64,000 nt of DNA from Bugula neritina. Its lineage: Eukaryota; Animalia; Bryozoa. Under the pieces are notes generated by a model that did not search any database, was not told the origin of the DNA, and saw only the letters and a program-made list of their open reading frames with translations. Below, in pieces: positions 12,117-58,978 of the stretch. How positions within the stretch are numbered: the first letter of the stretch is position 1; each line of letters starts with the position of its first letter. Made by a program: the position numbers and the translations under genes. The DNA is taken from the NCBI GenBank assembly GCA_964035545.1, contig OZ037773.1:5361751-5425750 (forward strand), given 5' to 3'.

Positions 12117-12780
12117 GGGGTAAGGGGGGGGGGGGGGGGTTAAAAGGGAGCACAACGGCCCGAATTTTGAATTCTTTGCTTTCATTCGTCTGTTTTTCAA
12201 GTTAATGTTATTAGTTCAATATTCTCTAGTCTAAATACTGCACCAGATGTCTATTATAGGTATCAGTTGGTTGTTTCTATCTCTTTCACAACTTTCAGAA
12301 TAATGAAAATTTCATGACGAAAAGTTGCCTATTGTGCCCGGTACAATATTCAGGCCATTGTGCCACTGGATGGGACACAGCAAAAATATTGGAAATTTGC
12401 TGATTTGGTTGCATCTGATCTTTAATTACTTAATATACACAAATAAATAAAAAATTCTATTTTAGATCTACAGCAAAAATTATGTTTTAGTTGTACAGTT
12501 TGTGCCACCACAAATAGCAGGGGGAAGCAAAATCAAACGCACATCACTCATTTCTACGGTGCCGTTATTATTAATTTTTAGAACTAAAAATGTTTTTTCT
12601 ATTTCCACTTCACAGGAACTTTCATCAGAAAAAACTTTAAGAACATGTACTATAAAATTCCGAGTGGACTTTTTTCTATAAACTGTAGCTATAAGGTGCA
12701 TGCATGGCTGAGGTTTGTGACTGGAGGGCGGAAGGGGCAGGGAGGGGGGAGGAAATGAGCAAATTACAATTTATTTTAGT
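12117..12780. mobile_element. TA-flanked MITE copy (same family as 54966-55559); right end not resolved
   Basis: Starts TA|GGGGTA; alignable by eye with 54966-55550 over ~550 bp. Confidence 0.8.
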
Positions 12781-16200: not shown

Positions 16201-19200
16201 TATCATTGCATCCTGGTTAAGAATGTATAATAGTATATATAATACATAATAGGTATATAATTGACCTGTTTCTAGTACACCAATGACGTGAAGAAAGCCG
16301 TAAACTCAAAAGTAAAGCCGCTAGAGGTCAGTTTCTACGTTCTTATTGTAGCCATGTCTGTGGTACCAGCTGGTCTTTATTTGTCACTCTGGTAGTATCA
16401 GTCTGTTATATAAATGCTGTTATTGCACAGGATGCTTAGTAAAAGCCCTCATGCTTGTACACACTTGCTGGCTAGTGTCGTTCTTGTCTATAGTTGAAGT
16501 GTCGTGAATTACAACAGCAAACTTTTTAAACACGAGAAATTTTAATTTTTTATTGAAAACTAATCATGTGTCTTTTCATTTTAGTTCACAGGCCTGTTGA
16601 AAATTGTTTTGTTTCTTTTTTTGCAACTTTTGTAATATGCCCACTGATTTAACCATGTAATGTAATATAGTGTATTGTATTGAACTGTCTGTAGAAAGTG
16701 ACAGCTGAAATAGCCATGTATTGCATTGTATTGTACTGCCTGTAGAAAGTGACAGCTGAAATAGTCATGCATTGTATTGTGCTGTCTGTAGAAAGTGACA
16801 GCTGAAATAGCCATGAAGGTAAAAAGACTGACAGACAAAGTCACTCAATCAGAGACAAGTGGTGAACACCTGGTGAATGCCATGAGAACTGTCTCTCACA
16901 GCTCTCAGCAAATTGAAACTGTTCAAAGTAAAGTTGCTGTAATTGAAAGACAAATCAAGGACTCTGGACTCGGTAAGTGTACTATTAAGACTCTGCTCAT
17001 CTCAAGTTACTGGAGATTCACATGCTCTCGGGCTGGGAGTTATGCTGACCTCAACAATGAAACTCTCACGTTACTGTCTCTAGTTTTTGTTGAAACTGCT
17101 ATTGATGCTTATTGAGATTGTAACACAACACACACGTTGCATGTTGTTATATGACACTGTTTAGTAGAACCTGGTTAAAAGTACATAGTCAACTTTCAAG
17201 ATGGATCCGACTGGATTATTTCAAAATATTTATTTGATTGTGAAATTTTGAAGAAGTTGTGTCAAGTTTTAAGGATCCTGATGTAGCCATTGTATTATTC
17301 TGGAATAAGCAGAAAATGATGACTTCTGGATTGTTTCTGAGCAGTTTATAGTTTTAAGAGAGGTTAAAAGATAGCAAGACCATAATGGACATAGCATATA
17401 CTATAAAAGAATTTATCCACCTGGCTTGATGTAGACCATATTTTTTCTGGTATAAATGAAGAGTTATGGTTCTTGATTTGCTTCTGGACTGTGGCATCTC
17501 TGTGTATAGTTTGAAACTGGTGAAAGATACCCTGACCGATGCAGCTATAGTGATGGTAGGTCTGTTGTCTTCAATTAGCCACCATATACTGCGTATGTTT
17601 CAGATCGAGTGACGGTCATCGACTCTCATTCACAGAACATCAGGCGACACACAGATTCAATTGGCGAACTGGACAAGCGTGTGAAGGTTTGTCTTCTCTT
17701 TATGAACCTTTCTATCATATACGTGGAAAATACGTTAAACGGTCGATGAACTGAAATCGAAACTCGTCTGGATTGCAATAGGAGAAACGCAGATTCACCA
17801 AACATATACGTCCAGCCAATATAGTTTGCTAATTGGTAAATGCTGCTTAATTTTTTATTCATTGTTTAGTGATCTTTCAAAAGACAGAGCATGTGGCGTA
17901 GCTCCAATATACAACCATTGTTTACTTGAAGGCAATTTCCGGCATTTTCTCTGCTCGGTGGAACATGGCGGTACAGGTACAGGTTCGGTCTCGAGTTACT
18001 CAAGTGGCAAAATTACACTCAATTTTTTTGTCTAAATTAAGTTTTTAGTCTCTTTCTAGAATCCAAGATAACAATTGTGCGCATTCATACAGCTACAGTT
18101 AAATTAAAACTCAACCGTGGGAACTTCTGGTTTGACTCTAATTGGTGTTTTCGGAAGAACTTTTTCAATTAAAAATGGAATGCATGTAACCTCTGTGTTG
18201 TTGAAGTAGGAAATATCCAGCTTTAACTTATAATGGCTGGCTATACTAAACATGTAACATAAATAACAGATATTACATCAGTTGCCAATCAGGAAGCAAA
18301 GCATCACTAATGTAGTATGAAGCTAAATGAAACTTCATGCTGGTTCATAGCCAGCTTCAGATCCTAAAACCTTGAAAAGTTCCAAAATTGCAGTTTTGTT
18401 TTATGTTTGTGCATTGCAACAGTTGATATGCTCTCAGATGTTAAATTTAGTTCACAAAGCATTACATAGAGTTATCAGTATAACATAACACAGGATTATG
18501 GGGCACTGATATCTCATCCCCAGCCACTCCCCCCAGTCACTCCCCATTGACATATTTATACTAATTTCCTGTGCCAACTCAAACTGATAATTTTACTATG
18601 TGTACAGAAAGCAAACGTTCCAGATGGCTGCTTACATTGATATAGCTGTCTACAACTCGACATTTTTGGAGAGCATAGTGTAGAATTCAGTGCAATGTAA
18701 ACATAAAATGAATAGCATAGTGTACTTGATAAGGATTTCAAATTGCATTTGCTCAATAGAGGGGTTTCAGACATCCCTCCAGAGGAATTTGTATTTTAAA
18801 GTTTTCTCCCCCTACAGGTATTGGGGGCAGTCTCCATGATATATAGAAGGCCCATAAAATAAGTAGAGATGTAAGGTTTGAGTGAAGACTACTACTAGTA
18901 TATGTTTCATTTTTTCTGAGATTAATATTTTGGCATAGGTACACATATGAGCAGTTTCAGAAATTTTTTAAAAAATTTTGTTAATGATAAATGGCACAAA
19001 AAGAAAACTTCAAAGCATATTTGTGGTTTTGGTTATTGAGCAAATCTGAAGCTGGCAGCTGTCATTATTATTTGCTTTGCTGACTGTAACCAGTCTGGTT
19101 AGAGCTGCTAACCTTTCAACTCTTAGAACAATAATAACATGCTCGTACACTATATAGCTGCACTAGTGGGCTCTGTCTTACTGAACTCCAAATGCTCCAA

Positions 19201-22200
19201 ATTATGGGTTGGAACACATGCCTGTACGTTTATGAAGGCACTGGCTCATTTGTATTAACATGTTCACGTACTTACACACCTATAGTATGAAAATAACTAA
19301 GCCACCCTACTATCTAATATTTCTATATATCAAAAAAATTATTATAAATATAAAGATATATATTAAAATAGATAGATTAAGTTTGTAATTTCAAACAACA
19401 TCTTATCTAAAAATGCCAAACACTGTATAACTATATATATTTTTTAAAAGCATTTGTTTACATGGCATGCCTGCAAGTCAATGAAAATATTTAGAGAACA
19501 GTAAAAAGAAGCATATAAATTTCAGAATAGTTTCTTCTTTTCTGAGATGAATAATTTGGAAATGTCCCACAATTCAACATTTAAATTAAGTCTGTAAAAG
19601 AATTTTTCACAGTGTATTTTCAATGAGTAATTATTCTTGCAAGCTGGTTTGTGTTTGTTCTAGCATGCCATTTTACAGTGGTCTAGTTAACTAGGTCAAA
19701 GTTCATTGAGGTGGAATTGTTTTATTAACCTCCTTGTGTTGATAAAATACTATCATTGGATTTAGAGCTTCTCTAAGCAACTTCACAGTCTGATTAAATA
19801 TCTGCGATACCTGCCTATTAGACAATCCAAACCTAAAAAATAATATACTAAATCTTTGTATTACATGTATGGATGAAAAATAATGCAACAAATTGGCTAA
19901 AGCATGTTCAAGTAATGTGAAAAACTCAAAATATAAATGAGTCAAACTAGAGCTAGTCAAGTGTGTGGTGTTTTTGGCCGATTTATATGTGTTGTTTAAT
20001 CAGCTTATTATGTAGTGATGTAATCCTATATAATGTAATTTAAGTTAGACAGCTAAAGTTGGACAGTTCTCATCGTGCACTTTCTTGAATAAGCAGTTAT
20101 GTATTATAGAGAGACAGCTACTCAACAGAGCCTTCAAGCAAACAAAATTCTTGCAACGAGGTTGATTGAATACAAAACAGCTGCTATTATTCTTATAGCA
20201 GCATGCATTGTATAAGAGATAGCCTGATGGTTCACATAGTTTACATACAGTGACATACCACTGAAAATTATTAGAAACCACAGAAAAGATATAAAGGAGA
20301 GAATGCTGGCACAAAGGAAGTATAGCAATGCCGTCAAATATATGGCTGAAAACTGACCTAGAGATAAATAAGTACAAAATGTACATAATATAGCTAAATC
20401 AGTAAAGCCAAATGATTTGATATAAAAAGTATTATCTGGGAATTTAGTGAAACTTTGTAGCATTATTTAGAACTCCACCTTTGAGCAAGATCCGTATGGA
20501 GTAAAGCCAATCTTAATTTTATTAGTGTCATAAGAATGCAGTCATTATGACATAGTTCGTTCTTTCTATACTTTACAGCTGGTACTAAATGTACATTTCA
20601 ACTTTTTTTTTTGCAAACAAAATAAGTTGCTTTGGCTGAAAAGTGCTTTTTTTTGATGATTTTTTTTCTGCAATGCAGCAGTATACAATTTACAATGCTC
20701 CAAAAACATTTCTTTATTAGGAATGTTGGTATACAAGCAGCTTGCAAGAATAGTTATTTATTGAAAATACACTGTGAATATTTTTTACAGACCTAATTTA
20801 AATGTTGAATGGTGGGACATTTCCAAAATATTCATCTCAGAAAAGAAGAAACTATTCTGAAATTTATATGCTTCTTTTTACTGTTCTCTAAATATTTTCA
20901 TTGACTTGCAGGCATGCCATGTAAACAAATGCTTTTAAAAAATATATATAGTTATACAGTGTTTGGCATTTTTAGATAAGGTGTTGTTTGAAATTACAAA
21001 CTTATAATCTATCTATTTTAATACACATCTTTATATTTATAATAATTTTTTTGATATATAGAAATATTAGATAGTAGGGTGGCTTAGTTATTTTCATACT
21101 ATAGGTGTGTAAGTACGTGAACATGTTAATACAAATGAGCCAGTGCCTTCATAAACGTACAGGCATGTGTTTCAACCCATAATTTGGAGCATTTGGAGTT
21201 CAGTAAGACAGAGCCCACTAGTGCAGCTATATAGTGTACGAGCATGTTATTATTGTTCTAAGAGTTGAAAGGTTAGCAGCTCTAACCAGACTGGTTACAG
21301 TCAGCAAAGCAAATAATAATGACAGCTGCCAGCTTCAGATTTGCTCAATAACCAAAACCACAAATATGCTTTGAAGTTTTCTTTTTGTGCCATTTATCAT
21401 TAACAAAATTTTTTAAAAAATTTCTGAAACTGCTCATATGTGTATCTATGCCAAAATATTAATCTCAGAAAAAATGAAACATATACTAGTAGTAGTCTTC
21501 ACTCAAACCTTACATCTCTACTTATTTTATGGGCCTTCTATATATCATGGAGACTGCCCCCAATACCTTTAGGGGGAGAAAACTTTAAAATACAAATTCC
21601 TCTGGAGGGATGTCTGAAACCCCTCTATTAATCATACAAACAGAGGTGTATCCCCTTGAGGACTTGAGTGTATGGTGGTCATTGGCATAAGTTTGCATCA
21701 CCATTGCTATGGATTTAACAAGTCAATTTTTGTTTTACCCCCTTATTGATTCTTTTTTTAAATATACCCTGTTAAGGTTGCAAGGTACAAAATCACAATG
21801 AGTTTTAGCAAGCAGATGCAGATAAATTGTTTCATCGTATCAATTATGAATATATAGAGATTCTCGTTTCCATAAATATGATTTAACTTGTATAGAATAA
21901 AAAACTTTATAATTTCAGCCAGCAAAATAATTTTTAATGCTGGATTCCATTATTCACCTAACAACTTATATAATCATCTGCTACACCTTTATTTATGTTA
22001 GAAGTTTAAGTAGATTTGCCATGCATGTGTTCAAATAACTCAGAAATGCTTTATATTGTTGCTATAAATGCAGGTTTGCTCTCAACTCTCAGCAGTTAGA
22101 ACAGCTGTTGACTGATTTTTACAAGACTCTAAGTAGATTCATTCAAAGTCTATAATAGATTATATATGCACAATACAGTCAATATTCAATATTGTTGCTT

Positions 22201-25200
22201 TTTAGGTTATTTTTCACATTTCTGGATTAAACCGTGGTTGAGTGAATATAGACCGGAATTTCAAATAATTTATAAGTAATTTACTTACAATGCGGTCCTA
22301 CTTATTGAGTTATATAAGTATCATAAGTATACTTATTAATTCATTGGTTAAAAAGTATTTGGCCTCCAGTGTATCTTGTGGAACTCTACAACTCCCTCCG
22401 CTTGGCTATACTTTGCACCAATGTTTAGTATTTTATATTACTGAGTAGCATTCTTTTGGTACCTAGTACTCAGCAATTGGTAATTTTATTGGTTCCAATA
22501 CACTATCTATTTTATACATTAACTTATTCGATCATCACACGATCTGAGTAGCATTTGCACATGGCCTATTTCCGATCTGAGTAGCATTTGCACATGGCCT
22601 ATTTCCGATCTTTTGTGGTACATAGTACAATAAGTCTTTAATGAGTTTAAAATAGCTGGTAAGTTAATTTATATTGAATAATTCTATACTCTGTAACTAC
22701 ACTTGGTAACTCTATACTCAGTTACTCTGTAACTCTATACTCAGTTACGCTGTAACTCTATACTCAGTTACTCTGTAACTCTATACTCAGTTACTCTGTA
22801 ACTCTATACTCAGTTACTCTGTAACTCTATACTCAGTTACGCTGTAACTCTATACTCAGTTACTCTGTAACTCTATACTCAGTTACTCTGTAACTCTATA
22901 CTCAGTTACTCTGTAACTCTATACTCAGTTACTCTGTAACTGCGCTTAGTAACTCTATACTCAATAACTCTATATTCAGTTACTCTTTAATTACACTTAG
23001 TAACTCTATACTCAGTAACTCTATATTCAGTTACTCTTTAATTACACTTAGTAACTTTATGCTCAGTAACTCTATATTCAGTTACTCTTTAATTACACTT
23101 AATAACTCTATACTCAGTAACTCTATATTCAGTTACTCTGCAATTACACTTAGTAACTCTAAACTTAGTAACTCTATGCTCAGTAACTCTATATCCAGTT
23201 ACTCTGCAACTGCACTTAGTAACTCTATATTCAGTAACTCTATATTCAGTTACTCTTTAATTACACTTAATAACTCTATACTCTATTACTACTAATAATA
23301 TCTTCATAATTCCAGTAATAGGTAGTGACTATAATGATGATGGTAAGAAGATAGGAATATCATATATAGCATCACTGGTAGGCCATGGAAAAGAAAGGTA
23401 TTGTTATTATAATGATTTTTATTTATTATAGTTTTTTATAAAATACGTTATTTAAAATTAATAACAATTTGTGTTGTTTATAATTGTTTTTATTGAGATA
23501 AAAATATTAGTTGATAACGACAATGTATTTTTTAAAAGAAAATTAAAAGTAACTTAGTAGCTGGTACTAATGATGATAAAACTATAATACTAATGCTGAA
23601 AATAATGATGACTTCTAGTTATGTTTGCATTATTCACCATTGGTAATAGAATAAAAAGTATATGTATATTAAAAATAAGAAAGGTAACAATGAGATGGTA
23701 ATACAGAGATAAGTATGATCAAGCTATACTACTATTCATATATAAATATGATTTATATAAGTCAAGGTGATATCTTGATACAATAAATATTCATAAGTAA
23801 CTTACCTTTATTGCAAGTTTGTATAATCATAGATGTTGTGTGTCACATAATTTAAAGTTTTCAATTTGATTGTTGAAATGTTAAATAACCATCCTTTAGT
23901 CAGTTATTTAATATAGAAAGTAATTGTCAAATACCAAATATTAAAATGATAATGTTTAGTTAGCTGCATGCTACAAATATGGTATGAAGGAAATCATAAA
24001 ACAATACTTTTGGAGAGTTGCTTTTATAAGGCAAGAAGACTCGGTAAAACTGAAAAGAATAAAAATGTAAATCCACTTCGAACTTAGGATAATTAATGAT
24101 TATCAGATCAAGAATCAATTATATATAATTCATGTCAATAGTATACTAATATATTATTTTTTATATTGTTTTATAGTCTTTTAGTGCTTGTATATGTGGT
24201 ATACTTGATTTTAAATCATGTATCTATTGTTCATAGCATCCAGTTCTGTGCTGGCAGCTCTAATGACATGACATTGTAACAATGACACACGTGTTTTTAA
24301 AATGGCCAAAGCGGGCCCACAATTTTTGTGACAATCTGTGCTAAAAGTATACTTCTTAATGCTGATTCTTTTTTTGTAAAACCCCGCATATTTTTATATA
24401 GAAAATCAATATATGTAATTGTGTGAATTCATTTTCCGAATATGACATTCAATTAAAATACTTGATAATGAATATGGTATCTACTTATACTACTATTTGC
24501 TGTACTTCAGTATCCTATTGATATTTACATTGCATGTAAAAGTAGGCTATACTTTTAGCAGTAACATTTGTTTTTTAGAACCCATTCGAAGAAAGATGAA
24601 CTGAAAGAAATTTAGTAGGTGAACTTCCAATCCTGCTTGTTTTTCTGTTTTAAATAATGACATTGTAAGCAGCTGATCAACTTTTTATAAAGCAAATTTG
24701 GTATATTTGTTACTTCAGCTTGATTTGAACAGTAGTTGAATAAGTAGAAATTTTTTAAGCATGTTTATTTAGACTCTAACGCCTAATTTTATTCAGAGCT
24801 GAAAAACAACTTAAGGCACTTTATAGGGTTGGGGGTGGCTGGAAAAGTTAGTTGGATAAAGTTTTTATTGCTTGATAGGCTCAGTTCACCTTGCAATGTC
24901 AGCCTTTCATGCTAACAAAAAAATTAATTTATATATTTAATTTGTATTACCCATTTACTTTTTGTGTATGCAGCACTAAGCCCATTGCTTTCTATAATTA
25001 TAATGGGTGTTATCTCCGATTACAAGATTACAATGGCCAAGACACACCGTGGAGCATGATGTTTGCAGATGATCTGGTGTTATGTGATGAGAGTAGTGAC
25101 AACATAGAAGAAAGATTGGAAGACCGGCCTAAAAGTCAGCAGATCTAAAACTGAGTACCTGCCACCAAAAGAACGCAGTGATGGCATCAAATTAAAGGAA

Positions 25201-28200
25201 TACGATAGCTCTGAACATGCCACTTTGCCTCAGAGAGTCACATTCAAATACCTGGAGACTGCAATCCTCCAGGAGGATGGATGCAGGATAGAGGTACAAG
25301 TTCACATTTGCAGAGCCTGGCATATATGGAGGGAGCTAACCGGGGGTTTTATGTGACAAGAAAGTCTCAAAGAAACTAAAGGTGCTTATTTACAAGACAA
25401 TAATATGACCAGTGCAACTGTATGCAGGTGAAACATGGCAACTGATGAAAATGTTGTGTTACTGCCTAAAAATTAGTCTTGAAAAGTACAAATCCAACGA
25501 AAGCATGAGGCAAGAAGCGAGTATCACAAATTTGTTAGAACTGATGAAAAGAAGGTTGCAGTGGTTTGGATATGTATGCAGAAGAGAAAATGAAGATGGC
25601 ATCAGCAATCAGGAAAGATCTCCAATCCTGTTCCATCAATGAAAAAGACGTTCAGGACAGAGTTAAGTGGAGAAGCCTAATTGACCTAGGTCTTCGGCAG
25701 GCAGCCACCCACTACCCGAACAGGACAAAGCGGAGATAGATGATAATTTTTTGTTTATATTTTATATGAAATGTCATATTTGTCTAAGTAAGGATGTTCA
25801 ATGCCTGTTGTAACTAGAACATTAAGTTGTTGCAAACTTCAGTTTTATAGTCCAATACAGAAAATAATCTAGATCCTAATATGTAATATTAAGGAACGAT
25901 GAATGTGGGTTAGTCATAAATAATAGATATCTGAAATATTTTACCTGAATGTTCCATGTATTCAAAATTGTTTCTGCTCAAATTTAATGCTATATCTACT
26001 AAATCTATTGGGAGATGAGCTCAGAAAGGTGAAAAGTAGTGTAACTAAACTTAGAAAAGCAAACTTACCTTTTAAAATGTCTTTCATTCTGCTATACTGA
26101 TCACATTTACTGGAAATCAGCTAGAAATAAGAAAGGATATATCTCAGCAGAGAAGATGTGGCTCTGAAGTTGTCTCCAAAAAGATGTGCTTGATTAGCCA
26201 TATAACTTTTGTAGTTGCCATTTATTATTAATATTGTTTAATTAAAATTATTCATATCTAATTTTGGTCTCAGTAAGAAGCTTATGATTAATTGTTCAAC
26301 CAATTGTTTCATTTTTAACATCTAATTGTACTGCAAGATGAAAAGTATAAAGTGACCTACTAATTAAGCTATATTTCTATTTACATTCACCCAGCATAGC
26401 CTATGGCCCAAACAATAAATTTTATATCAATCTGATTTTAAGGGTACATGGGATCTGTTGGTAGCTTTTTCACTTGACTAATATTTTGTTATTTTTATGC
26501 TGTAAAAAACTGTTAATGGGTTTTGCAATTGTACCATCATGTTTATGCTTTGCGAAACAATTTCTATAGTGCACTAATGTGTGAATTCTATATTTAAATG
26601 CTTATTTCATTTACTAAAGACATTTCAATAATAATCGAAATCACTGCTTATTGTCAATGTTTAAAAACAAAACAATATTTTAACAATGCAAACAGGTAGC
26701 ACCACAAACCATTAGGAAAAAAGCACAGCTACACTTTAAAATATCTTAATAACTGTATGTATGTAAACCAAAAAACATAAGAAGTGCAAGTTTCGATCGG
26801 GTAGAACACACCATTTCAAAAATTCCAAAATAATTAATGGATAACTTCTCGCACACATTATGCAGCAAGAGTAACATTGAAATCATTTACAGCTGTGTGC
26901 AAAACATATGGAGTGTAAATAAAGGCTGCAATAAGTATTTCAAACCAACAATAGACCATGTAAATTTGGTATATTTACTACCTTGTATTCATTCTAGAAT
27001 ACTCACCATTATAACTTATATAAACTTCTGCAAGCTCAAATGCAAAATGTGTATTTTTAAAAAATAGCTGTGCAACTTTTATTACATGCATTATTTTATT
27101 TCATATCTTAAATTTATAAATCATGAGTTCTTTTTTCAAAATCTTTATTTGCACTTTTTAAGCACTTGAATTAAACATTTTGAAAAAGGAACTCATGATT
27201 TATAAATTTAAGATATGAAATAAAATAATGCATGTAATAAAAGTTGCACAGCTATTTTCTAGAAGTACGTATTTTGCATTTGAATTTGCAGAAGTTTATA
27301 TAAGTTATAATGGTGAGTATTTTAGAATTAGTACAAGGCAATAAATGTACCAAATTTACATGGTCTATTAAGTTGCACTATTATGCAAATTTATTAAACA
27401 TTAAAAAGTTGCAATAGCTTTTTTGCCAGTAAAATAAAGATGAGTTAAGCAAAAAGGATGAGCCCTACGAGAATTCGTATGTACATGCATAACGAGCCAT
27501 TTTCAGTTATCAGCATTTGAATATACTAAAAATACTAATGTTAATTATACAATGTAATAAAAGTATACTTTCCTAAAGAATAACATGTTTGCTTTGTAGT
27601 TTTATCTATATATGTAAAAGTTCAGCTGGTAAATAATTGCGTGTATCCCGAAAGAAAATTATATTATGCATTGGTCGTATTTTTATATTGGGCAACTTTT
27701 AAAGATTCAGAAACTGCTTTATGTTAAAAGATGCGGAGTCAGTCATCATCGAGTTTTTTGTACATGTAATAAAACCGGTGGAGCTTGTTGAACACTACCA
27801 AACCGCGTCACATGGATTTTTTTGCTGTATCTTCTTATAAAAATTCCTACATAAATCATGATTGAAACCATTGAATTTGGGCTTGAAAACATAAGCCATA
27901 TTTTAAGATTGTAGTTTCAGTTTTCATGTAGTATTGCGATGCGTCTCTATTCTCTAAAGTATGTCGTCAGGTGAAACTGAATTTGAGAAGAAAAATACTC
28001 TTTGTTTTCTTTTGTTACTGCCTGTTTTGTCGTTGATATTCTGAATGAATCCATTTTTGTAATAATTAAAGGGTTTCATATAAATGCGCTAGCCAGTAAT
28101 TCATGCAACTTTCAACTATATTTATTGTATGGTAAGTATATCAACCTTTAGACCGATTTGTGTTTTGATTAATTTATCGTCATCGAAAAACATAACCTTG

Positions 28201-29659
28201 AAACTGCATTTATGGTATCATAAGTATATCATCATTTATCAACTTTAACTTGTATTTATCCCATCGTAATTATATTATCTCAAAACTCAGCTTATTAATT
28301 GGTCTGTAGAATGTAGAGTTGGGCTCATATGATGGAATTCTAGTTTGGAAAATTAATGATTATAAACGGAGAAAGAGTGATGCAGTCAGGGGAAGACAGA
28401 TGTCCATTTACAGCCACCCCTTCTATACGTCTCGCCATGGCTACAAGATGTGCTGTCGTGTGAGTATATTGTTTATTTGAAAGCAATTCCAATCAGTGGT
28501 TAGGTGTGCTCGATTTTCGCGAAGAATTTTATCGCAAATAACTTCATCGCAAAGAGCTTTATCGCAAGGAACTTCAACGCGGGCTATAATGGTTGTAAAT
28601 GTATTGGCTAATTTGGTTAATGTGTTACCATATGTAAAACACTCTCGCGTATGAATTGGGCTGCAAATGTTACTATTATTATAATAATAGAATACTCAGG
28701 TCATATTGTAATGAATGCACATTTAGTATCCTTAAAGAGTTCGATAGAAAGTTTAACTTATAATCAAAACCAAAAGACAAAGTGTGCCAGAAATAAAATG
28801 TGTCACTCAAATTTAGTTTCTTACCTACTGTGCATACAGTGGATTTGGTTACCAGTTTGTGGGGTGAAAATAAACTGAATGACCATTTCTGGAGTAGAAT
28901 ATGATTCTGGTCTTCATGTGCAAAATGGGCTGCTATTGACTTCATTTGAAAAAGTTTTACAACAATTTTTAAATTTTATAAGTAAGCAACTTCAAAGAGT
29001 TAATTCTTGCGTGTAATAACTATATTAATATAATGCTCAGCTCTATATATGAAAGACAGAGATTCTTGAGCCCTTGCATTCTGCTCTCATGTTATTATTC
29101 TCAGTTGAAATGTACTATTTGTGAAGAGAATTCTTATACATCTTTTTCCATACATTACCAAGGTACCATGTTGAGCTGTTTAAAATTGTGCACTTGTGAG
29201 GTATGCTGTATATCAACGTTTTGTTTTTAATTAGGCGTATCTAAATGGAGATGGATTGGGCAGAGCAAAGTGCCTGAGTCTGTTCTTTGTTTTGATGAGG
29301 GGAGAATATGATGAGCTGCTCCATTTCCCTTTCAAACAGCGAGTCACTTTCAGTCTATTGTGTCCGTCGAACCCCTCTCTGAGCAAGCACGAGACCTTTC
29401 TGGTGAGTTTAGTCATTTCTCAGTTAGATCTCTACAAAGTATGTCATGAATCCTCACAGTTTATATATTGTTATATACAATGTACTTTCAGCCTGATCCA
29501 GACAGCTCATCCTTCAGACGGCCTCAGACTGAAATGAATATTGCCAGTGGTTGTCCCCAGTTTGCTCTTCATGCTGATGTTGAGTCAAGTAATTTTCTTA
29601 TCAATGATTGTATATATGTTCGGGTTCGGGTTGAACCTGGTGGTGATGTCATCGCCTAA
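13255..29659 (+). CDS. TRAF3-like: TNF receptor-associated factor, TRAF2/3/5 type (TRAF-A), ~557 aa. Exons: 13255-13313, 13565-13705, 14000-14237, 14764-14925, 15168-15242, 15489-15686, 16276-16326, 16792-16972, 17604-17686, 28310-28459, 29235-29402, 29492-29659
   Basis: 12 GT-AG exons total 1674 nt in one frame. RING-like CAIC..PHQTPCGNRVCKKC..CP, five TRAF-type zinc fingers, heptad coiled coil, MATH domain SYDGILVWKI..YSHPFYTSRHGYKMCCRAYLNGDG..LSLFFVLMRGEYD..FPFKQRVTF..PDPDSSSFRRPQTEMNIASGCPQF, which is close to TRAF3/TRAF2 as remembered. Exact orthology needs a tree. Confidence 0.95.
16670..16815 (+). repeat. Triplicated 3' splice site plus start of TRAF-A exon 8
   Basis: CTGTAG|AAAGTGACAGCTGAAATAG(C/T)CATG begins at 16695, 16746 and 16792. 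Confidence 0.92.
17740..17990 (+). promoter_or_regulatory. Intronic CpG-rich promoter-like island: ISRE, CCAAT, ETS, YY1-like ATG
   Basis: GAAATCGAAACT 17753-17764; AGCCAAT ~17814; ATTTCCGGC ~17935; AACATGGCGG 17962-17971. Confidence 0.5.
18758..21626. mobile_element. ISL2EU/Harbinger-related foldback element, ~890-bp inverted arms (18758-~19646 and ~20738-21626), decayed transposase fragment inside
   Basis: AT|AGAGGGGTTTCAGACATCCC ... GGGATGTCTGAAACCCCTCT|AT; the ORF track shows the same 63-aa ORF on opposite strands; spacer ORF 19703-19960(-) RFGLSNRQVSQIFNQTVKLLREALNPMIVF..IPPQ resembles the HTH region of Harbinger/ISL2EU transposases. Confidence 0.85.
22540..22610. repeat. 33-bp direct duplication
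   Basis: GATCTGAGTAGCATTTGCACATGGCCTATTTCC twice in tandem. Confidence 0.9.
22700..23285. repeat. 23-bp minisatellite (AACTCTATACTCAGTTACTCTGT) grading into a longer composite unit
   Basis: Direct reading; explains ORF 23059-23295. Confidence 0.95.
25030..25745 (+). mobile_element. 5'-truncated, frameshifted RTE-clade LINE (reverse transcriptase C-terminal part)
   Basis: PWSMMFADDLVL, GLKVSRSKTEY, FKYL, AW..WRELTGVLCDKKV..KLK..IYKT, LY..ETW, RRLQWFG.V.RR across frames. Confidence 0.9.
26780..26940 (+). mobile_element. Possible decayed Penelope-like retroelement fragment
   Basis: NTPFQK...SKSNIEIIYSCVQNIWSVNKGCNK resembles the NPPFSK...NRNTVKVSYSCMPN....I..HNK segment I recall from Penelope-like elements; short and degenerate. 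Confidence 0.3.
26953..27366. mobile_element. Palindromic MITE (~190-bp arms, ~35-bp loop), AT TSD, ISL2EU-like ends
   Basis: AT|AGACCATGTAAATTTGGT ... ACCAAATTTACATGGTCT|AT; arms align by eye through to ~27142 / ~27177. Confidence 0.9.
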
Positions 29660-32246
29660 GGAGGCGGGGTGGGGGAGCCTGACCGGGTGCAAAATAAGTC
29701 CCCCAAATGACGTGATGCTGGGTAAACTGATTGAGTATGACTTTTATAATAAACTGATTAGCATTGAAAATATCATTTCTCATGTCATTTTCATAACAAT
29801 AGCTCTCCAATATTTATATTCAGTTAATGCCGAAATTTATATTTTAATGAGTAAATATGTTGTTTGTTATAAAGCTTCTAAAGTTCTCTTTATAAAAAAT
29901 ATATTATATATACTATTATATTGAGAATTTCAGGGGTTTTTTAAATAAAAATCAACATGTTTACTGATTAAAATTTGAGGATAAGTTAGGATTTAGCATA
30001 TTAAACATTTTAAACTATATACAAATTCTACTGTCAATAAGTGTAATATGCATAACCTCAGTATTTGAAAGAAAATTATTGTCTATCGAAAATTATTTTC
30101 CTGAATCTGAAACATACACTTGATAATACTCAATCTGTTTACCTGCGTTTACTGATGGCAGTGCAGTCCGGTTTACCTGCTCCTCTCCACCCCGCTGACA
30201 TAGTCCGATACGTCAGCAGCAACTGTTTTGTTGCCATGCTATCAGGACTTTCCTTAGGCTGTAGTGTGCAGTGGTACAAAGAGAGAAATTGCTGTGAATA
30301 TTTACTTTGTTCATCACTAGCTGTATGTTAGACTGCTTCTGTATTATTACTCATTTATGGTTACTTTTGATTTTGAAATTTATAAAATTACTAATATATT
30401 CAAATAATGCTGCAATGTCTGACAATATTCTGACGTATCATTATATCATAATAAGGTAGACTATAAGCTGGTAATCTGCCATATTTAGTGTTTATGTTTT
30501 GTTGTGCTCATTGTTTTAATCTTACTGTCAGGAAAAAATTATATAAAAACAACAGAACTTTTTTCTAGTTGGCAGAGTTATTCATCATATTCAGATTACT
30601 AACAAGTTCATGTGGGATTGGTATTATTATGTAACATTTTCATGTAGGATTGGTGTTAGATAACTCCCATACTATGATATTTTTATTAATTTAAATTATT
30701 TACTTTTTGTTTTACACTTTAGTACTGAGTGCTTGCAGACAAGCTTATAATTAGTGCTTACCGTAATTCATATTTGTATAATGTTGTCAAATCAAGTCTG
30801 GTGTTCTCAGAGATATGTTTGCTTCAATATTACTGATTTGTATTTGTATTTGATTTGTTTGGAATATATAGCCTCAAACCGTGCTGTGTATTTATAAGGC
30901 TTATTACAATATTCTGTATATTATAACGTATTGTTTTTTTTTTTCATGTTTAGTTTATATTTGTTTATGCTGTTTTCCTAATTTCTCTCTTTTTCATCGT
31001 TGGGCTATCATAACTTCTATTAAAAAAGCAGTCTTTGAGTAAGACCTCCCTTTTTATTCTCACTAAAAGCTAACAATTTTGTTACTGCCGTGCTGGGGTT
31101 TATTCATTGGTTTAGTCAACCCTAGCCACTAACTACTCGGTGTCTTTGTAAGTGAGTGTCACCACAGACCTAGCTGGTGGCACTCTCTTGATGTTGACCA
31201 GAGCTACTGTGGAACCTCTTATGATTATTTCCTGAAGTATAATGGCGCCATCTTATTTCTTGTTAGAAAAAATTAAGATTGAGTTTCAAGTTGAATTGGG
31301 ACGAAAGAATTGTTTTTTAGTTTGAGAATATGAAGATTGGTTTCAGAAAACAATAAACAATTTTGTCTCTTTTTTAGTTATGATAGCCCATTGAATGAAG
31401 CTACTGCACACTTTATTGACAATGTGAAATTTTTCATCTTAGGTGTTGGTAACCGGTCTTCAATTTTAAATTAATAATTGAGGCTGGTTGAGGAGTTTAT
31501 GGTGACCAGTACAGCCTGCTAACCCTTTTGTGTTTTTTATTTCACTAACTTCTTTAGTTGTTTTGATACATGCTTTTGAATTTTATCTTTAAATTGCTTT
31601 ATCCAAAATAAATACTTATATAATGCTACAATACTCAAATATTTCAAAATCTGTAATGGTCTCTCTTTACTAAGGATAACTGCTTTTACCAATTGTCCTC
31701 TTCATAACCTACATTAAGAAGCGTTCTGGTGGTTAGTCTGCATGTTGTCTGGAGAAAGCTCTCTTCTGTTACTTTCTGTCCAGACTCTGCAAATGAGAGC
31801 CAAAATGGGGCTGGTAGTAGGCATAGCGTAGAATGATCTCTACTTGTCCAGCATTGTTAACAGAAAAGTGGAAGGGCTGTAATAGCTGTTGCTATTTTAC
31901 TTTTCCTAGAGAAATAAATGAACTGAATCAAATAAAACATTGCTTTGCATATGCATCTCTCTCTAAATGAAGCTAAAGAACAGCAAAAACCAACAATAGT
32001 GAGGAGACCTAATTTGATACACAATAATAAAGCACAGCAAGCTGTTGCATTGCTCCAACATTTTCAAAGCAAATATTTCTTTATGTTGGACCCAAATTCA
32101 CACTTGAATAACGGGGAAAACTGTATGCTGATTGCTGCATATAACTTATAGCAAGCTAGCTTAGTTATATTTAGTGCGACACTCTCACATGATTTAGGTC
32201 TGTTGTTTAAGGTTTGACCTGCTTGTTCGTAATAGTATGCTTTGCA

Positions 32247-38931: not shown

Positions 38932-41538
38932 TGTGTGTGTGTGCGTGTGCGTGTGCGTGTGCGTGTGTGTGTGCGTGCGTGCGTGCGTGTGTGTGTGTGT
39001 GTGTGTGCGTGTGCGCGTGTGTGTGTGTGCGTGTGCGGGTGCGTGTGCGTGTGTGTGTGCGTGCGTGCGTGCGTGTGTGTGTGTATGTGTGTGTGCGTGT
39101 GCGTGTGGTGCGTGCGTGCGTGGGTGCGTGTGTGTGTGTGTGTGGGAGTGTTTTTGTGTGATACATTATGCTCTTAGTGTAATCATATACAAGTGGTTAT
39201 CTTAATACTTTTTCAGTCTAACACAAGCTTGAAAGGAACAGAACTGTTTCAAACTGCCTCACCAGGTGATGTATAAAATCACATTATTAGATATTGTCAA
39301 GATACTCTAATTATAGCAAACTGACATATGCATGTGTTTATTTCTTTAAATTATAAAGTTTTTATTAATTTTAGTTCCTAAGCATTCTAAATTTTTGTAA
39401 AGTTAAAGTGTTTAAAAAATAAATTCAAAATTAATTTTGAACTGCAGATAGTCCTTTAACTTTATAATGTGGCAGAAAAAATAGCAGTACCTTAAAATTT
39501 TAGTGTTGTACTATAATTATGCATTTTTCAAGCTACTGGTAAATGTTTATTTTCCTTATTGAATAACATTTGTAAATGGTGAATGTTGCTTTCTTACAGG
39601 AAATATTCACGTGGCACCAAACAGTCAAAATTCCTCAGCAAAGTCTGTAAATGATGTTGGTAAAAAGGTGAGTAGACAGTCTCCATCAGTCTTGTTGCTT
39701 CTTTCATGTAAGCGGTGTGGAGTCCTTGTGTGGGCTGCAGTAACGATCTGTTTAGGGAAGACAACTTCTCCTTTGTGTAGCACTCTGATATGCATACACA
39801 TATGGTCCCTGGAGTTATCTTTTCGCTTCCCAGTAGCTACGCAGTATACGAACTATAACAATATTAGAGTATAAAAATACACCATATTCCTAAAACTTGC
39901 AGTGATCATAATATTATGTTAGAATTTTTTTGTTCTGAAACAGAAAACCAGTTCAATAAATTATGAAGGAAGATTGCTATGGCATATAAGTGATTACCGA
40001 GAGAAGAAGAAAATGGCGGAGTTGGGCAAAGGTCAATTGTACATCTCTAGCAGCTCCTTCTACAGCTCTCCGAAAGGCTACAAGATGCGCTGCAGAGTAA
40101 GCTGTTCCTTGTTTGAGTATTTTCGGTTTTCTTCAATTGCTTCAAATTTCCTTTCTTCAAAATGTGCTAAAAATAGTTTCATTCAGCAATTTCTTATTTT
40201 ACATAAACTGTAAAACATAATAAGCTAAGTTTATTTGGTACTTTAGTTGTTTTTGTAAGATGCTAGTATGTGATTTCTTTAGCTCCAACTTATTTACATA
40301 ATTAAGTAATCCTGGAAATAGTGATATAGTAGTTTATTTATATGGGGTTACAAATATTAGTTTCATGTTACAAAAGTTATTATCCTAACATAACATTTTA
40401 TGTTATAAACTGCTTGTATTTTTCTTTGCTACAATAGTAATTTGATTCTGTGAGCATTCGAGCTTCATTGTTATTGGAAACTGTTTTCACTACGCTACCA
40501 TAGTTTACTATATTGTATATAACATCATTTGCATGGAATGAATATAATATTCAGAACACCTGCACTAACAATAACTTTTATGTAATCTTGTTATAATTCA
40601 ATAGCATTATTCAAGACAGTCAGTTCACTTCAAGTATGTACTGCAGTATTACAAAAACTGCCTAGCGTAATGCTAACAAAGTAGAAATAATACTTCATAT
40701 ATATTTTCAGGTATATTTGAACGGTGACGGTTGTGCAAAAGATCAGTACCTTAGTGTTTATTTTATTCTCATGAAAGGAGAATTCGATGATTATTTGTCT
40801 TTCCCGTTTCAACAAAGAATTTCATTTAAACTCATTTGCCCATATGATGAGTCTAAAAACAAAACCGAATACCTATCAGTAAGTAGTGATTTTTATCTCT
40901 TTGATCTTTCTAATGCTGGTTATTTTTTATTATTACTGTTTGTTGGGTTAACTGATTAAATCAAATACAAAGCTTATTTAGCCAAAATAAATAGTGACTT
41001 TCAATTACTATAACAATTAACACGGTAGATAAAAAGTAACATTGAAAATTCAAAAATAGATAAAATCCTTTGAAAATTCAGGTTATGAGCTGCAACAGTA
41101 TATAATCGTACAAAATCTTAATAAGTAACATGATTACTTGAAGTTAAGTTGGTCTTGCAACATATACTGAATTTTTATGCCTTGAATAAAATCTACCCAT
41201 CCAAGGTGTAGAAGCAAAATTTTGCTTAGGCTATTAAGTAATATTTTATTGTTATATTGTTTATATAATGCTCTTTTATCATTTATTTCATTTAATTTTT
41301 TGTGGGACACTAATCTGATAACAAGCCAATGGCAACTCTCTCTATTGTAATAAACAAGACTAGGTTCCAATCACTGATTCAATGTTTTGCACAGATTGCA
41401 GGCAATGAGGCAGCTAGTCGTAGACCCCTAGGCTATGAGAATATTGCCTCTGGAATACCATTGTTTGCATCTCACAAGGAAATAGATGCATGGTACGTGA
41501 AGGAGAACAGCATCCAGATAGAGGTCAAAGTGATCTGA
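35415..41538 (+). CDS. TRAF: Divergent TRAF (TRAF-B), ~486 aa, no recognisable coiled coil. Exons: 35415-35509, 35823-35945, 36637-36862, 37871-38035, 38202-38273, 38489-38686, 39217-39265, 39600-39667, 39944-40096, 40711-40878, 41395-41538
   Basis: 11 GT-AG exons total 1461 nt in frame; [28 protein letters not shown]-like region, zinc fingers, MATH ([57 protein letters not shown]). Exon sizes 198 and 168 match TRAF-A. First exon and the two linker exons are less certain. Confidence 0.9.
36338..36480. repeat. (GATT)n followed by (TATT)n microsatellite
   Basis: Direct reading. Confidence 0.95.
37090..37285 (-). mobile_element. tRNA-derived SINE (same family as 53205-53402)
   Basis: Aligns with the 53205 copy (CAATTATGACTG.ATG..C.TCCTA.CATCACCAATGGCCTTTG); degenerate A/B boxes on minus strand. 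Confidence 0.75.
38860..39143. repeat. Compound (TG)n/(TGCG)n microsatellite
   Basis: Direct reading; explains four spurious ORFs. Confidence 0.95.
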
Positions 41539-43936: not shown

Positions 43937-51414
<7,478 letters not shown>

Positions 51415-51489
51415 AAACTCATGATTGACTAAAGTCACAATAATCACATGAAGAAACTTGATGGAAAGGAGTTTCAGTCAGCTGAGAGT

Positions 51490-51640
51490 ATTAGTGAGGT
51501 TTTCGGGCACAAGAATGATGTCATGACTGGATACGAAATTTTTGACATCCCAAAAAACTTCTGCTGGGATTTGAACCTATAACGAACAAGCACAGGTGTG
51601 CTGTGCTGAACCAGTGCCCTTGACACCAGATCATAGCTGT
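51490..51640 (-). mobile_element. Diverged SINE-like fragment in the TRAF-C 3' UTR
   Basis: Minus-strand B-box GGTTCAAATCC and ATCCAGTCAT core shared with the other SINE copies. Confidence 0.5.
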
Positions 51641-54965: not shown

Positions 54966-55559
54966 GGGGTATCGAGGCAATTTTGAATTTTTTGCTCTCA
55001 TTCGTCTGTTTTTCAAGTTACCAGTTCAATAATCTCTAGTATAGATGCTACACCAGTTGTTTATTACAAGTATCAGTTTGTGTTTCTATCTCTTTCACAA
55101 CCTTCAGAATAATGAAATTTTCGGTGAAAAAAACGGTCCACTGTACCCCGGTATCGAGGTACAATGGGCCACTGGGTGGGACACAACAAATATATTGAAA
55201 CTTTGCTGATTTGGTTGCCTCTAATCTTTATTTATTATACACAAGTAAATAAAAATACTCTTTTAGATTTACAGCAAAAATTATGTTTTAGCTGTACAGT
55301 TTGTGCCACCACAGGTAACAGGAAGAGACAAACTCAAACGCACATCACTCATTTCTAAGGTGCCTTAGAACTAAAAATGTTTTTTTTTCTATTTCCACTT
55401 CACAGGAACCTTCATCAGAAAAAGCTTTAGTAACATGTGCTATAAAATTCTGAGTGGACTTTTTTCTTTGAACTGTAGCTAAGGTGGCTGAAGTTTTCGG
55501 TTGCAGTGCGGAAAGTGGGGAGGAAATGAGCAAATCACAAGTTATTTTAGTTTTACCCC
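54966..55559. mobile_element. TA-flanked MITE (Tc1/mariner-like ends)
   Basis: TA|GGGGTA ... TACCCC|TA; second copy from 12117. Confidence 0.8.

Positions 55560-58913: not shown

Positions 58914-58978
<65 letters not shown>

Follow-up and report, generated by a model that had tools for sequence, protein, structure and literature searches.

Background

Concerted evolution of the primate gamma-globin genes proceeds through conversion tracts of hundreds of bp, which leave mosaics of incompatible sites, end where homology is lost and carry introns along. Exchange of the gamma-globin type takes place between young duplicates, whereas the bryozoan TRAF genes described here are ancient paralogues with saturated synonymous sites, and their tracts include one one-sided illegitimate junction.

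Closer to the present case are the paired immune receptors. Siglec-11 and Siglec-16 (and also the pair Siglec-5/Siglec-14) have been kept alike through repeated gene conversion (PMC5701461; PMC4042635). In these pairs, as in the bryozoan TRAFs, conversion is confined to the ligand-binding exons while the signalling part stays different, the process recurs across several lineages, and a copy that is non-functional may join. The Siglecs, however, are two-member pairs at the cell surface, for which equal ligand preference and opposite signalling have been shown experimentally, whereas the TRAFs are five intracellular adaptors known from their sequence. In the CEACAM paired receptors the ligand-binding domains co-evolve (PMC5112662); as in the bryozoan TRAFs, homogenisation within a tandemly arranged immune family is limited to one domain, but it concerns extracellular Ig domains and is driven by pathogen binding, while in the bryozoan it is the cytoplasmic MATH domain that is homogenised.

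A full-text literature search found no report of gene conversion or concerted evolution of TRAFs, vertebrate ones included. The bryozoan exons share with vertebrate TRAF3, TRAF5 and TRAF2 the motifs YLNGDG, PDPxSSSF (the 'serine tongs' segment of TRAF domains; PMC6204373) and NIASGCP, as well as an upstream zf-TRAF domain. Unlike these vertebrate genes, the bryozoan family is a lineage-specific tandem expansion in cheilostome bryozoans.

A family of six genes and its shared tract

The window, i.e. the whole stretch of Bugula neritina DNA that was analysed, is 64,000 nucleotides long, and coordinates below refer to it. Six TRAF3/5-like genes (TRAF-A to TRAF-F) lie on the same contig, with TRAF-A, TRAF-B, TRAF-C and TRAF-D in tandem on the + strand and TRAF-E and TRAF-F on the - strand, 283-318 kb from the tandem genes. 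Homology searches were run exon by exon. The MATH domain (PF21355) matches exons 10, 11 and 12 of both TRAF-A and TRAF-C, and zf-TRAF (PF02176) matches 14764-14964 in TRAF-A and 47128-47337 in TRAF-C, while the RING-like exon (13869-14243 or 46093-46377) has no Pfam match. Exons 11 and 12 match the TRAF-C domains of TRAF3, TRAF5 and TRAF2 (PDB 1kzz, 1flk, 4gjh, 1ca9) with E values from 1e-10 to 7e-14. The N-terminal exons (RING-like, zf-TRAF, coiled coil) of TRAF-A, TRAF-C and TRAF-D are 34-57% identical, and the divergence of these exons among the six genes is ancient. The features of TRAF-A and TRAF-C that matter here are the following, with exon and intron borders taken from the sequence.

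28310-28459, + strand: TRAF-A exon 10, where the MATH domain begins (50 codons; PF21355 positions 2-21), outside the tract
29226-29647, + strand: TRAF-A tract, comprising exon 11, intron 11 (89 bp) and exon 12, and stopping 10 nt short of the stop codon
29235-29402, + strand: TRAF-A exon 11, 56 codons, phase 0, PF21355 positions 22-74 (E = 1.2e-14), matching TRAF3 chain 1kzz_A (E = 7e-14)
29304-29544, + strand: core of the probable latest TRAF-A/TRAF-C exchange, 241 bp with 2 mismatches, both intronic
29403-29491, + strand: TRAF-A intron 11, 89 bp, GT..AG
29492-29659, + strand: TRAF-A exon 12, 55 codons and TAA, with PDPDSSSF and NIASGCP, PF21355 positions 81-125, aligned with TRAF5 4gjh_A and TRAF3 1kzz_A
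50401-50550, + strand: TRAF-C exon 10, unconverted
50942-51402, + strand: TRAF-C tract, including the last 48 bp of intron 10
50990-51157, + strand: TRAF-C exon 11
51158-51246, + strand: TRAF-C intron 11, 89 bp, with 0/89 differences from the TRAF-E intron
51247-51414, + strand: TRAF-C exon 12, in which the tract stops at 51402

When 29100-29800 is compared with 50850-51550, the best local alignment pairs 29230-29647 with 50985-51402 without a gap, at 399 identical positions out of 418 (19 mismatches, 95.5%), and in a self-blastn of the whole window the tract is the second strongest match (29226-29647 against 50981-51402; 422 bp, 95.3%, E = 0). Exon 10, at 74.5%, is the only further nucleotide match between TRAF-A and TRAF-C in that search, and diverged sequence flanks the tract on both sides: upstream this is exon 10 with intron 10, downstream the final codons with the 3' UTR. 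An earlier, sequence-only reading of this DNA had described an intron with two differences between identical stretches of ~96 nt at the end of exon 11 and ~50 nt at the start of exon 12, with mismatches rising toward both edges. The alignment bears out each of these points: the 89-bp introns differ at 29414 and 29416 only, the identical stretches measure 99 and 53 nt, and the fully identical runs cover 29304-29413 (110 bp) and 29417-29544 (128 bp). Also as described there, exon 10 differs at 13 of 50 residues (42/150 nt; pS = 0.81, saturated), and no intron other than intron 11 can be aligned between TRAF-A and TRAF-C. The same reading had placed in the tract the pocket residues that bind receptors, and the PDPxSSSF...NIASGCP segment of TRAF2/3/5-type TRAF-C domains indeed aligns there; given the conservation of SSSF, NIASGCP and YLNGD, binding of receptor peptides of the PxQx(T/S) type is a putative function. 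Its description of the tract as a 'half' of the MATH domain was too narrow, as Pfam positions 22-125 of 125, most of the domain, are encoded by it.

Transfer at the level of DNA

Calculated per exon, synonymous divergence between TRAF-A and TRAF-C is saturated in exons 1-10 (pS ~0.8) and falls to a dS of 0.14 in exon 11, where dN is 0, and of 0.38 in exon 12. TRAF-D makes the same jump, with a dS of >2 in exon 11 and of 0.07-0.25 in exon 12. In our own GENECONV-style permutation test, which scores how long a run of polymorphic sites stays concordant, none of 10,000 permutations attained the run seen in TRAF-A/TRAF-C, by which chance is excluded, and the same was found for A-D, C-D, C-F and D-F (p<=1e-4), while pairs with TRAF-B were not significant (p=0.09-0.46). 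Trees of the six paralogues conflict from exon to exon: the N-terminal exons group A, F and E together with long branches for C, D and B, exon 11 gives a tight clade of A, C, E and F, and exon 12 places A, C, D, E and F in a star, support within the tract clade being low. The sequence-only reading had attributed the identity to recurrent conversion, and it is supported in this by dS, the intron and the trees: the transfer is non-reciprocal and takes place at the level of DNA, and selection at the protein level does not account for the identity. A GC-biased signature is absent, with a GC3 of 0.39-0.45 in the tract and 0.37-0.49 elsewhere.

The exchange, placed earlier between TRAF-A and TRAF-C, is not limited to these two, since the tract is common to five paralogues (TRAF-A, TRAF-C, TRAF-D, TRAF-E and TRAF-F), with a different 5' breakpoint in each. 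It measures 888 bp, from exon 10 on, between TRAF-E and TRAF-F, 460 bp between TRAF-C and either of these, 422 bp between TRAF-A and TRAF-C (with the 241-bp near-identical core) and 251 bp in TRAF-D. The TRAF-A tract is 95.3% identical to that of TRAF-C (422 bp), 94% to TRAF-E, 93% to TRAF-F and 95% to TRAF-D (251 bp); the TRAF-C tract is 94.1% identical to TRAF-E and 92.2% to TRAF-F (460 bp), and 96% to TRAF-D (250 bp). The 89-bp intron shows 0-6 differences in 89 positions among the five copies. At the 3' side all copies share one tract end, ~10-35 nt before the stop codon, which is the point where ancient homology stops; the 3' UTRs beyond it are gene-specific, except in the true duplicates TRAF-A and TRAF-F. 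Because TRAF-E and TRAF-F are inverted relative to TRAF-A to TRAF-D, exchange between the two groups is not a matter of simple unequal crossover.

The remaining two tandem genes show a partial conversion and none at all, respectively.

63282-63449, + strand: TRAF-D own exon 11, unconverted, 59% (aa) and 65% (nt) identical to TRAF-A exon 11
64116-64366 (extended; contig 5425866-5426116), + strand: TRAF-D converted segment, just past the window end
40714-41532, + strand: TRAF-B exons 11-12, located by tblastn (HSPs at 40714-40869 and 41404-41532), outside the converting group

In TRAF-D the tract starts 15 nt before the end of the donor exon 11, within the 770-bp intron of TRAF-D, so that the 5' junction is non-homologous: a 15-nt relic of the donor exon 11 and the donor intron lie inside TRAF-D's own intron. 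Being non-coding, the relic and intron would not be preserved by selection. The sister-taxon orthologue has this junction too (L035:14130-14380), and no remnant of an older exon 12 was found in the 770-bp intron or in the downstream DNA. TRAF-B is 52% and 34% identical (aa) to TRAF-A in exons 11 and 12, has no nucleotide match to TRAF-A, TRAF-C or TRAF-D in self-blastn, has lost the serine triplet (NEAASRRP) and carries ASGIP as its second motif; it is too diverged to participate in conversion.

Following these results, the tract very probably arose through recurrent interlocus (ectopic) gene conversion in the TRAF3/5-like family. The 3' end of the gene (exon 11, the minimal 89-bp intron and exon 12) would have been overwritten repeatedly by paralogue copies in five of the six genes, most likely through repair of double-strand breaks on a paralogue template without crossover. 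In the latest event TRAF-C was the probable donor and TRAF-A the recipient, the donor being presumed here as in each of the events. We infer that the conversion is neutral. As such it is well documented and mechanistically ordinary, and it does not by itself constitute a new mechanism.

Sister taxon and other bryozoans

The public Bugula neritina assembly GCA_010799875.2 differs from the window's genome by 9-10% substitution divergence and is used here as the sister taxon. Its orthologues of TRAF-C, TRAF-D, TRAF-E and TRAF-F have the 89/90-bp intron, whereas its TRAF-A orthologue has an unrelated intron of 332 bp, which means that the tract entered TRAF-A after the split. TRAF-A thus gained the tract and the 89-bp intron from a paralogue after the two lineages had separated, the polarity being given by one outgroup taxon; on the opposite, less probable polarity, the 89-bp intron would have been lost from the sister's TRAF-A. 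A search of the window's own genome gave no match to the 332-bp intron, and patches of similarity between it and the 89-bp intron in a MAFFT alignment were rejected after a shuffle test (z=-0.5).

Single sites within the tract also depart from orthology. A derived G at 29369 occurs in TRAF-A and TRAF-C alone, against A in the nine other copies (both orthologues included); 29324 is T in TRAF-A, TRAF-C, TRAF-E and TRAF-F of the window's genome and C in four of the five sister copies; and A at 29461 in the sister copies of TRAF-F, TRAF-C and TRAF-D runs against orthology, as does the sharing at 29468. From 29626 on, the variable sites follow orthology. Within the tract, paralogues in one genome differ by 3-5% and orthologues across the taxa by 4-5%, and because these distances are alike, much of the homogenisation must be older than the split. 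Post-split exchange rests on the TRAF-A intron and a handful of sites.

Equal conservation of the intron in distant species had been named beforehand as the result that would point to selection instead of conversion. In Watersipora subatra and other bryozoan contigs an intron is present at the same position, yet it is 152-878 bp long (878 bp in W. subatra) and unrelated, by which selection on the intron is rejected. JGI metagenome contigs, found through protein look-ups, contain the tract in orthologues of TRAF-C, TRAF-D, TRAF-E and TRAF-F, while an exact-pattern scan of metagenome contigs for 19 invariant nt of the intron was negative.

Alternative explanations

An adaptive reading leaves the mechanism the same and adds a cause: selection would favour conversion because it keeps the docking surface identical across adaptors with different RING/zinc-finger effectors, so that a single receptor would act through several outputs, in the manner of paired immune receptors. 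The sequence-only reading had leaned this way, and several observations agree with it, i.e. every residue that aligns with the peptide-binding segment of TRAF2/3/5 (YLNGD, SSSF, NIASGCP) lies in the tract, TRAF-B as the sole member outside the converting group lacks the serine triplet, the N-terminal exons are as diverged as given above, tract-bearing transcripts are abundant in bulk RNA contigs (with the 89-bp intron spliced out in those of runs X10 and X9), and Siglec-11/16 provide a precedent (PMC5701461). On the other hand, the motif PDPDSSSFRRPQTEMNIASGCPQF is equally conserved in the Watersipora paralogues, which are only 68-72% identical in DNA, and the docking motif is likewise kept in human TRAF3/5; ordinary purifying selection, which maintains it in these unconverted relatives, therefore suffices. 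Conversion has, moreover, moved an intron and the non-coding relic together with the exons, the sister TRAF-E orthologue retains the tract although its reading frame is cut by a premature stop and shifted by a 16-bp insertion, and the pocket of TRAF-D is chimeric, unlike the others, with its own diverged exon 11 (YLNGHEG) and a converted exon 12. The adaptive reading is judged unlikely. Somewhat more doubtful is an arrangement of one docking module with several effector modules, in which selection would favour repeated conversion because the peptide-binding MATH surface has to co-evolve as a single unit with a shared and changing partner (which may be the tail of a receptor or a factor from a pathogen or symbiont), with diversification confined to the RING-like and zinc-finger parts.

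That the pattern goes back to a small number of single events that made chimeric genes, by unequal crossover or by segmental duplication in which exons were replaced, and not to recurrent conversion, is improbable. The non-homologous 5' junction of TRAF-D, common to both taxa, does look like a single old event, and the share of homogenisation that predates the split would agree with such a history. The tract ends are, however, all internal to the genes, with gene-specific 3' UTRs outside the one duplicate pair, TRAF-E and TRAF-F are inverted, TRAF-A changed after the split, and the informative sites fall into several mutually incompatible partitions within 340 bp in both taxa.

An artefact of assembly or polishing, in which reads of one paralogue corrected another copy or a collapsed tract was copied, is very improbable. 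The evidence from reads consists of short Logan contigs of public runs, in which unitigs end at 29227 and 29578, the edges of the tract, and the T that is private to TRAF-A at 29416 was not seen in run X1. None of these short contigs bridges the unique 5' flank of TRAF-A and the tract, and the assembly of this copy is therefore without independent end-to-end confirmation; the 3' boundary is spanned by an X1 contig (29578-30303). As to the earlier concern about a chimera, the short contigs give no sign of one. Against an artefact, the five copies all differ in their breakpoints and carry substitutions of their own, in TRAF-A for example 29416 T, 29545 C and 29614 A, the independent GCA_010799875.2 and JGI contigs repeat the tract in the C, D, E and F orthologues (odd D junction included), two unrelated read sets show the TRAF-D junction as loose ends, the summed contig depth across the tract in X1 is ~5x that of the flanks, and the length of the window's contig, 10.9 Mb, indicates a long-read assembly.

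Selection that conserves the sequence for a function of its own in intron or exon (a splicing enhancer, say, or a structured RNA), with no transfer between genes, is just as improbable: the intron does differ at just 16/356 sites (4.5%) over four orthologue pairs, about half the 9-10% background, but such a halved rate would be expected in a minimal intron of which splice signals make up a large share, its fold is ordinary (z=-1.25), selection alone cannot hold 95-100% identity over 250-460 bp where other introns are unalignable and synonymous sites saturated, and the TRAF-A orthologue, Watersipora and further bryozoan contigs all have unrelated sequence in the intron's place. A functional RNA was considered for 29100-29800 and dropped, as Rfam gave only 18.5 bits against a gathering score of 58.

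Implications

Recurrent gene conversion in this family means that ancient paralogues of an innate-immune adaptor can go on exchanging one domain after the remainder has diverged past nucleotide recognition. Trees of bryozoan TRAF MATH domains will mislead orthology calls, because the paralogues look young in them, and dN/dS scans of these TRAF genes need to be partitioned by tract. The replacement of the TRAF-A intron since the split of the two Bugula lineages is a dated and polarised conversion event, which, together with the rare one-sided illegitimate junction in TRAF-D, is useful for the study of the mechanics of ectopic repair. If the arrangement of one docking module with several effector modules were true, it would be an intracellular counterpart of the paired immune receptors, undescribed for TRAFs.

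TRAF paralogues and the tract common to TRAF-A and TRAF-C

Six-frame self-comparison revealed four tandem TRAF3/5-like paralogues within the window (TRAF-A to -D, + strand), and a Pfam scan found ~13 TRAF-MATH genes in the window's genome, six of them on the same contig (C9), TRAF-E and TRAF-F on its - strand included. In exon-by-exon searches the Pfam TRAF-mep_MATH profile is covered at positions 22-74 by exon 11 and 81-125 by exon 12 (A and C), and at 2-21 by exon 10; an exon farther upstream matches zf-TRAF. The best solved-structure matches are the TRAF-C domains (not the gene so named here) of TRAF3, TRAF5 and TRAF2 (E=1e-10 to 7e-14), with which YLNGDG, PDPxSSSF and NIASGCP are conserved, the SSS segment being the 'serine tongs' of TRAF2/3 (PMC6204373).

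Features of TRAF-A to -D in window coordinates (genes from the self-comparison; exons and introns from reading frame and splice sites)
13.5-29.7 kb, +, TRAF-A
28310-28459, +, TRAF-A exon 10
29235-29402, +, TRAF-A exon 11
29403-29491, +, TRAF-A intron 11 (89 bp, GT..AG)
29492-29659, +, TRAF-A exon 12
35.8-41.5 kb, +, TRAF-B
45.6-51.4 kb, +, TRAF-C
50401-50550, +, TRAF-C exon 10
50990-51157, +, TRAF-C exon 11
51158-51246, +, TRAF-C intron 11 (89 bp)
51247-51414, +, TRAF-C exon 12
56.6 kb to past the window end, +, TRAF-D

Amino-acid identity between A and C climbs along the gene (40, 44, 45, 38, 34, 57, 56, 72, 100 and 93% per exon). Pairwise alignment gives a gapless 418-bp block with 19 mismatches (29230-29647 versus 50985-51402), the second strongest match of the window with itself, in which 29304-29413 and 29417-29544 are identical and the intron differs solely at 29414 and 29416. 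Exon 10 differs at 13 of 50 residues and 42 of 150 nt, and at the DNA level the two genes align in exon 10 (74.5%) and the tract (95.3%) only. The direct alignment bears out every number given in the sequence-only reading, which had proposed conversion between A and C.

Five copies with different breakpoints

A DNA search of the window's genome (216 Mb, 321 contigs; the window being C9:5361751-5425750) found five copies of the tract, all on C9. The proposed exchange therefore stands in so far as A and C share the tract, but it is not confined to these two, as D, E and F carry it too.

Further tract copies found by DNA search
64116-64366 (window numbering continued past 64,000), +, TRAF-D copy, just past the window end
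C9:5107284-5107704, -, TRAF-E copy, 283 kb away
C9:5073061-5073475, -, TRAF-F copy, 318 kb away

F and A are duplicates over the whole gene, with a substitution divergence of 10.7% across 5.2 kb, introns counted; E belongs to their subfamily (dS of 0.5-1.2 for the N-terminal exons). C, D and B are old paralogues in which dS is saturated, and DNA comparison detected no nucleotide similarity of TRAF-B to other family genes. The 5' breakpoints differ by gene: E and F have 888 bp in common, from exon 10 through exon 12, F being A-like elsewhere; the stretch that C has in common with E and F is 460 bp long and takes in the final 48 bp of intron 10; and A shares 422 bp with C. In D the similarity extends over 251 bp only, starting abruptly 15 nt before the end of the donor's exon 11. 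Since D's own exon 11 is retained in diverged form (63282-63449; 59% identity to A), the 15-nt exon 11 relic and the 89-bp intron form the last 104 bp of its 770-bp intron. On the 3' side every tract fades 10-35 nt before the stop codon, and variable sites past 29626 track orthology.

TRAF-E itself (L006, reverse strand, 3917-6338) has no detectable counterparts of three middle A exons (one zinc-finger, and coiled-coil exons), and its C-terminus is extended by 10 residues (GGEKFPKEKRNTELF); the gene may be in decay even as its 3' end goes on exchanging.

Conversion versus selection

Between A and C the proportion of synonymous differences is ~0.8 (saturated) in every exon through exon 10, against a dS of 0.14 for exon 11 and 0.38 for exon 12; in pairs with D, dS jumps between exon 11 (>2) and exon 12 (0.07-0.25). 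The longest observed run of concordant polymorphic sites was matched in none of 10,000 permutations for A-C, A-D, C-D, C-F and D-F, and no pair including B was significant. Trees of the N-terminal exons, exon 11 and exon 12 conflict in the pattern expected under conversion. The 89-bp intron matches no Rfam family and folds in no unusual way, and as the relic in D is non-coding, only copying can account for its 14/15 identity. E and F lie in the opposite orientation to A-D, so a crossover between them would invert the ~290 kb in between; the exchanges must therefore have taken place without crossover. What is seen is interlocus gene conversion of the classical kind.

Equal conservation of the intron in distant species, by which the sequence-only reading would have recognised selection, is not what is found: in Watersipora subatra the homologous intron has the same phase-0 position, is 878 bp long and unrelated in sequence, the exons being 79-84% identical as protein but only 68-72% as DNA, and introns in contigs of another bryozoan (152-707 bp) are likewise unrelated. 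W. subatra has at least eight TRAF3/5-like paralogues on one chromosome (OY755162.1; P0010, P0155, P0157-P0163) with identical coiled-coil peptide patches, e.g. GDHLVNAMRTVAHSSQQIEQVS, and conversion may occur in its coiled coil too.

History of the tract in the sister taxon

Orthologous DNA was found by profile-free protein search with exon 11 and subsequent contig look-ups, in the public Bugula neritina assembly GCA_010799875.2 and in JGI metagenomes of the same lineage. These contigs are colinear with the window loci and show a substitution divergence of 9-10% across 22 and 16 kb, so the window derives from a bugulid lineage close to, yet distinct from, that assembly; the coded read sets likewise mark it as bryozoan. 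The sister orthologues of C, D, E (two versions) and F have the 89- or 90-bp intron, and D's odd 5' junction lies at the identical base. In the A orthologue (annotated TRAF3, 568 aa), however, intron 11 is 332 bp, with no similarity to the 89-bp intron detected (z=-0.5 against shuffles). The simplest reading of these sequences is that A in the window lineage acquired the 89-bp intron from a paralogue after the split; the derived G at 29369, common to A and C alone, points to C as donor between 29304 and 29544.

Sites shared against orthology occur in both taxa: at 29324 the window lineage has T in A, C, E and F, against C in four of the five sister copies; at 29461 the sister orthologues of F, C and D have A, and at 29468 those of C and D have C. 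Several partitions are mutually incompatible inside 340 bp, and exchange has therefore been recurrent. Tract distances between paralogues within a genome (3-5%) resemble those between orthologues (4-5%), which implies that much homogenisation predates the split.

For the F orthologue, 107 bp are missing in frame from one JGI contig (L032:2330-2331 versus L033:10121-10226): the intron in full, together with the final 3 nt of exon 11 and 15 nt of exon 12. The NCBI assembly, which represents the same lineage and is otherwise 99.7% identical, contains the segment, and the gap reflects a deletion polymorphism or else an artefact of assembly.

Read support

Read evidence came from Logan contigs of public runs, X1 being the best DNA read set. 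Its summed contig depth rises from ~98 in the flanks to 480-627 within the tract, a ratio consistent with some five copies. Unitigs are interrupted at 29227 and 29578, the points at which paralogues start and stop sharing 31-mers; one contig (29578-30303) spans A's 3' boundary. Both X1 and a 2016 run unrelated to it show the D junction, as a loose end at 29388. Read sets X4, X10 and X9 carry 29324 C, 29369 A, 29461 A and 29468 C, in each case the very state of the sister taxon, and RNA contigs show the 89-bp intron spliced out. No Logan contig joins A's 5' flank to the tract, and A's private 29416 T was not seen in X1, which leaves a small residual doubt over copy A.

Other features of the locus

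The TRAF-A intron between the coiled-coil exon and exon 10 (18757-28277) is ~9.5 kb long, against 139 bp in F. It holds a 2.9-kb element (18755-21629) ending in 895-bp inverted repeats (18755-19649 and 20735-21629, 97.9% identical), probably a foldback or TIR transposon; the sister A locus stops aligning at 18757 and resumes at 21627, which makes the element a lineage-specific insertion. A tandem array in the same intron (22679-23290; units of roughly 85-100 bp, 72-79% alike) recurs in the sister taxon in expanded form. Upstream of TRAF-A lies a 620-bp sequence (12163-12780) that is 79% identical to one upstream of TRAF-D (54979-55551) and has a counterpart upstream of the D orthologue (L035:3600-4588); it may be a common promoter region or a repeat. 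Dinucleotide microsatellites at 2216-2302, 45263-45367 and 58912-58985 match one another at 93-100%.

Functional reading

The SSS segment of TRAF2/3 has a textbook role in binding PxQx(T/S) peptides. That conversion would preserve a common docking surface, as the sequence-only reading held, fits the canonical YLNGD...SSSF...NIASGCP kept in the converting group and altered in TRAF-B (NEAAS, ASGIP) and in D's own exon 11 (YLNGHEG), but is not required by it. We consider this adaptive role unlikely, since the same peptide is preserved in Watersipora paralogues without DNA identity, the sister E orthologue bears the tract despite a stop codon and a 16-bp insertion, and no GC-biased signature is seen in the tract.

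That E orthologue (L009:1074-1245, JGI 3300002729; L010 identical) has CGA>TGA in 'SSSFR*PQ' and the tandem insertion in exon 12, and so is probably a pseudogene that still carries the tract; a second E-type contig (L031) is without the stop codon. In TRAF-B exon 12 (41404-41532) the serine triplet is gone (NEAASRRP) and NIASGIP replaces NIASGCP, changes that point to peptide binding being altered or lost.

In function, the nearest known parallel is with the paired receptors Siglec-11/16, whose ligand-binding exons are kept alike by repeated conversion (PMC5701461), and the CEACAMs are a further example (PMC5112662). The literature search turned up no account of TRAF genes evolving in concert. 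Given the Watersipora peptide, the broken E orthologue and the lack of GC bias, we favour the reading that homogenisation of the TRAF tract would be a by-product of homology-dependent repair inside the gene cluster, the outcome of which would then be filtered by purifying selection.
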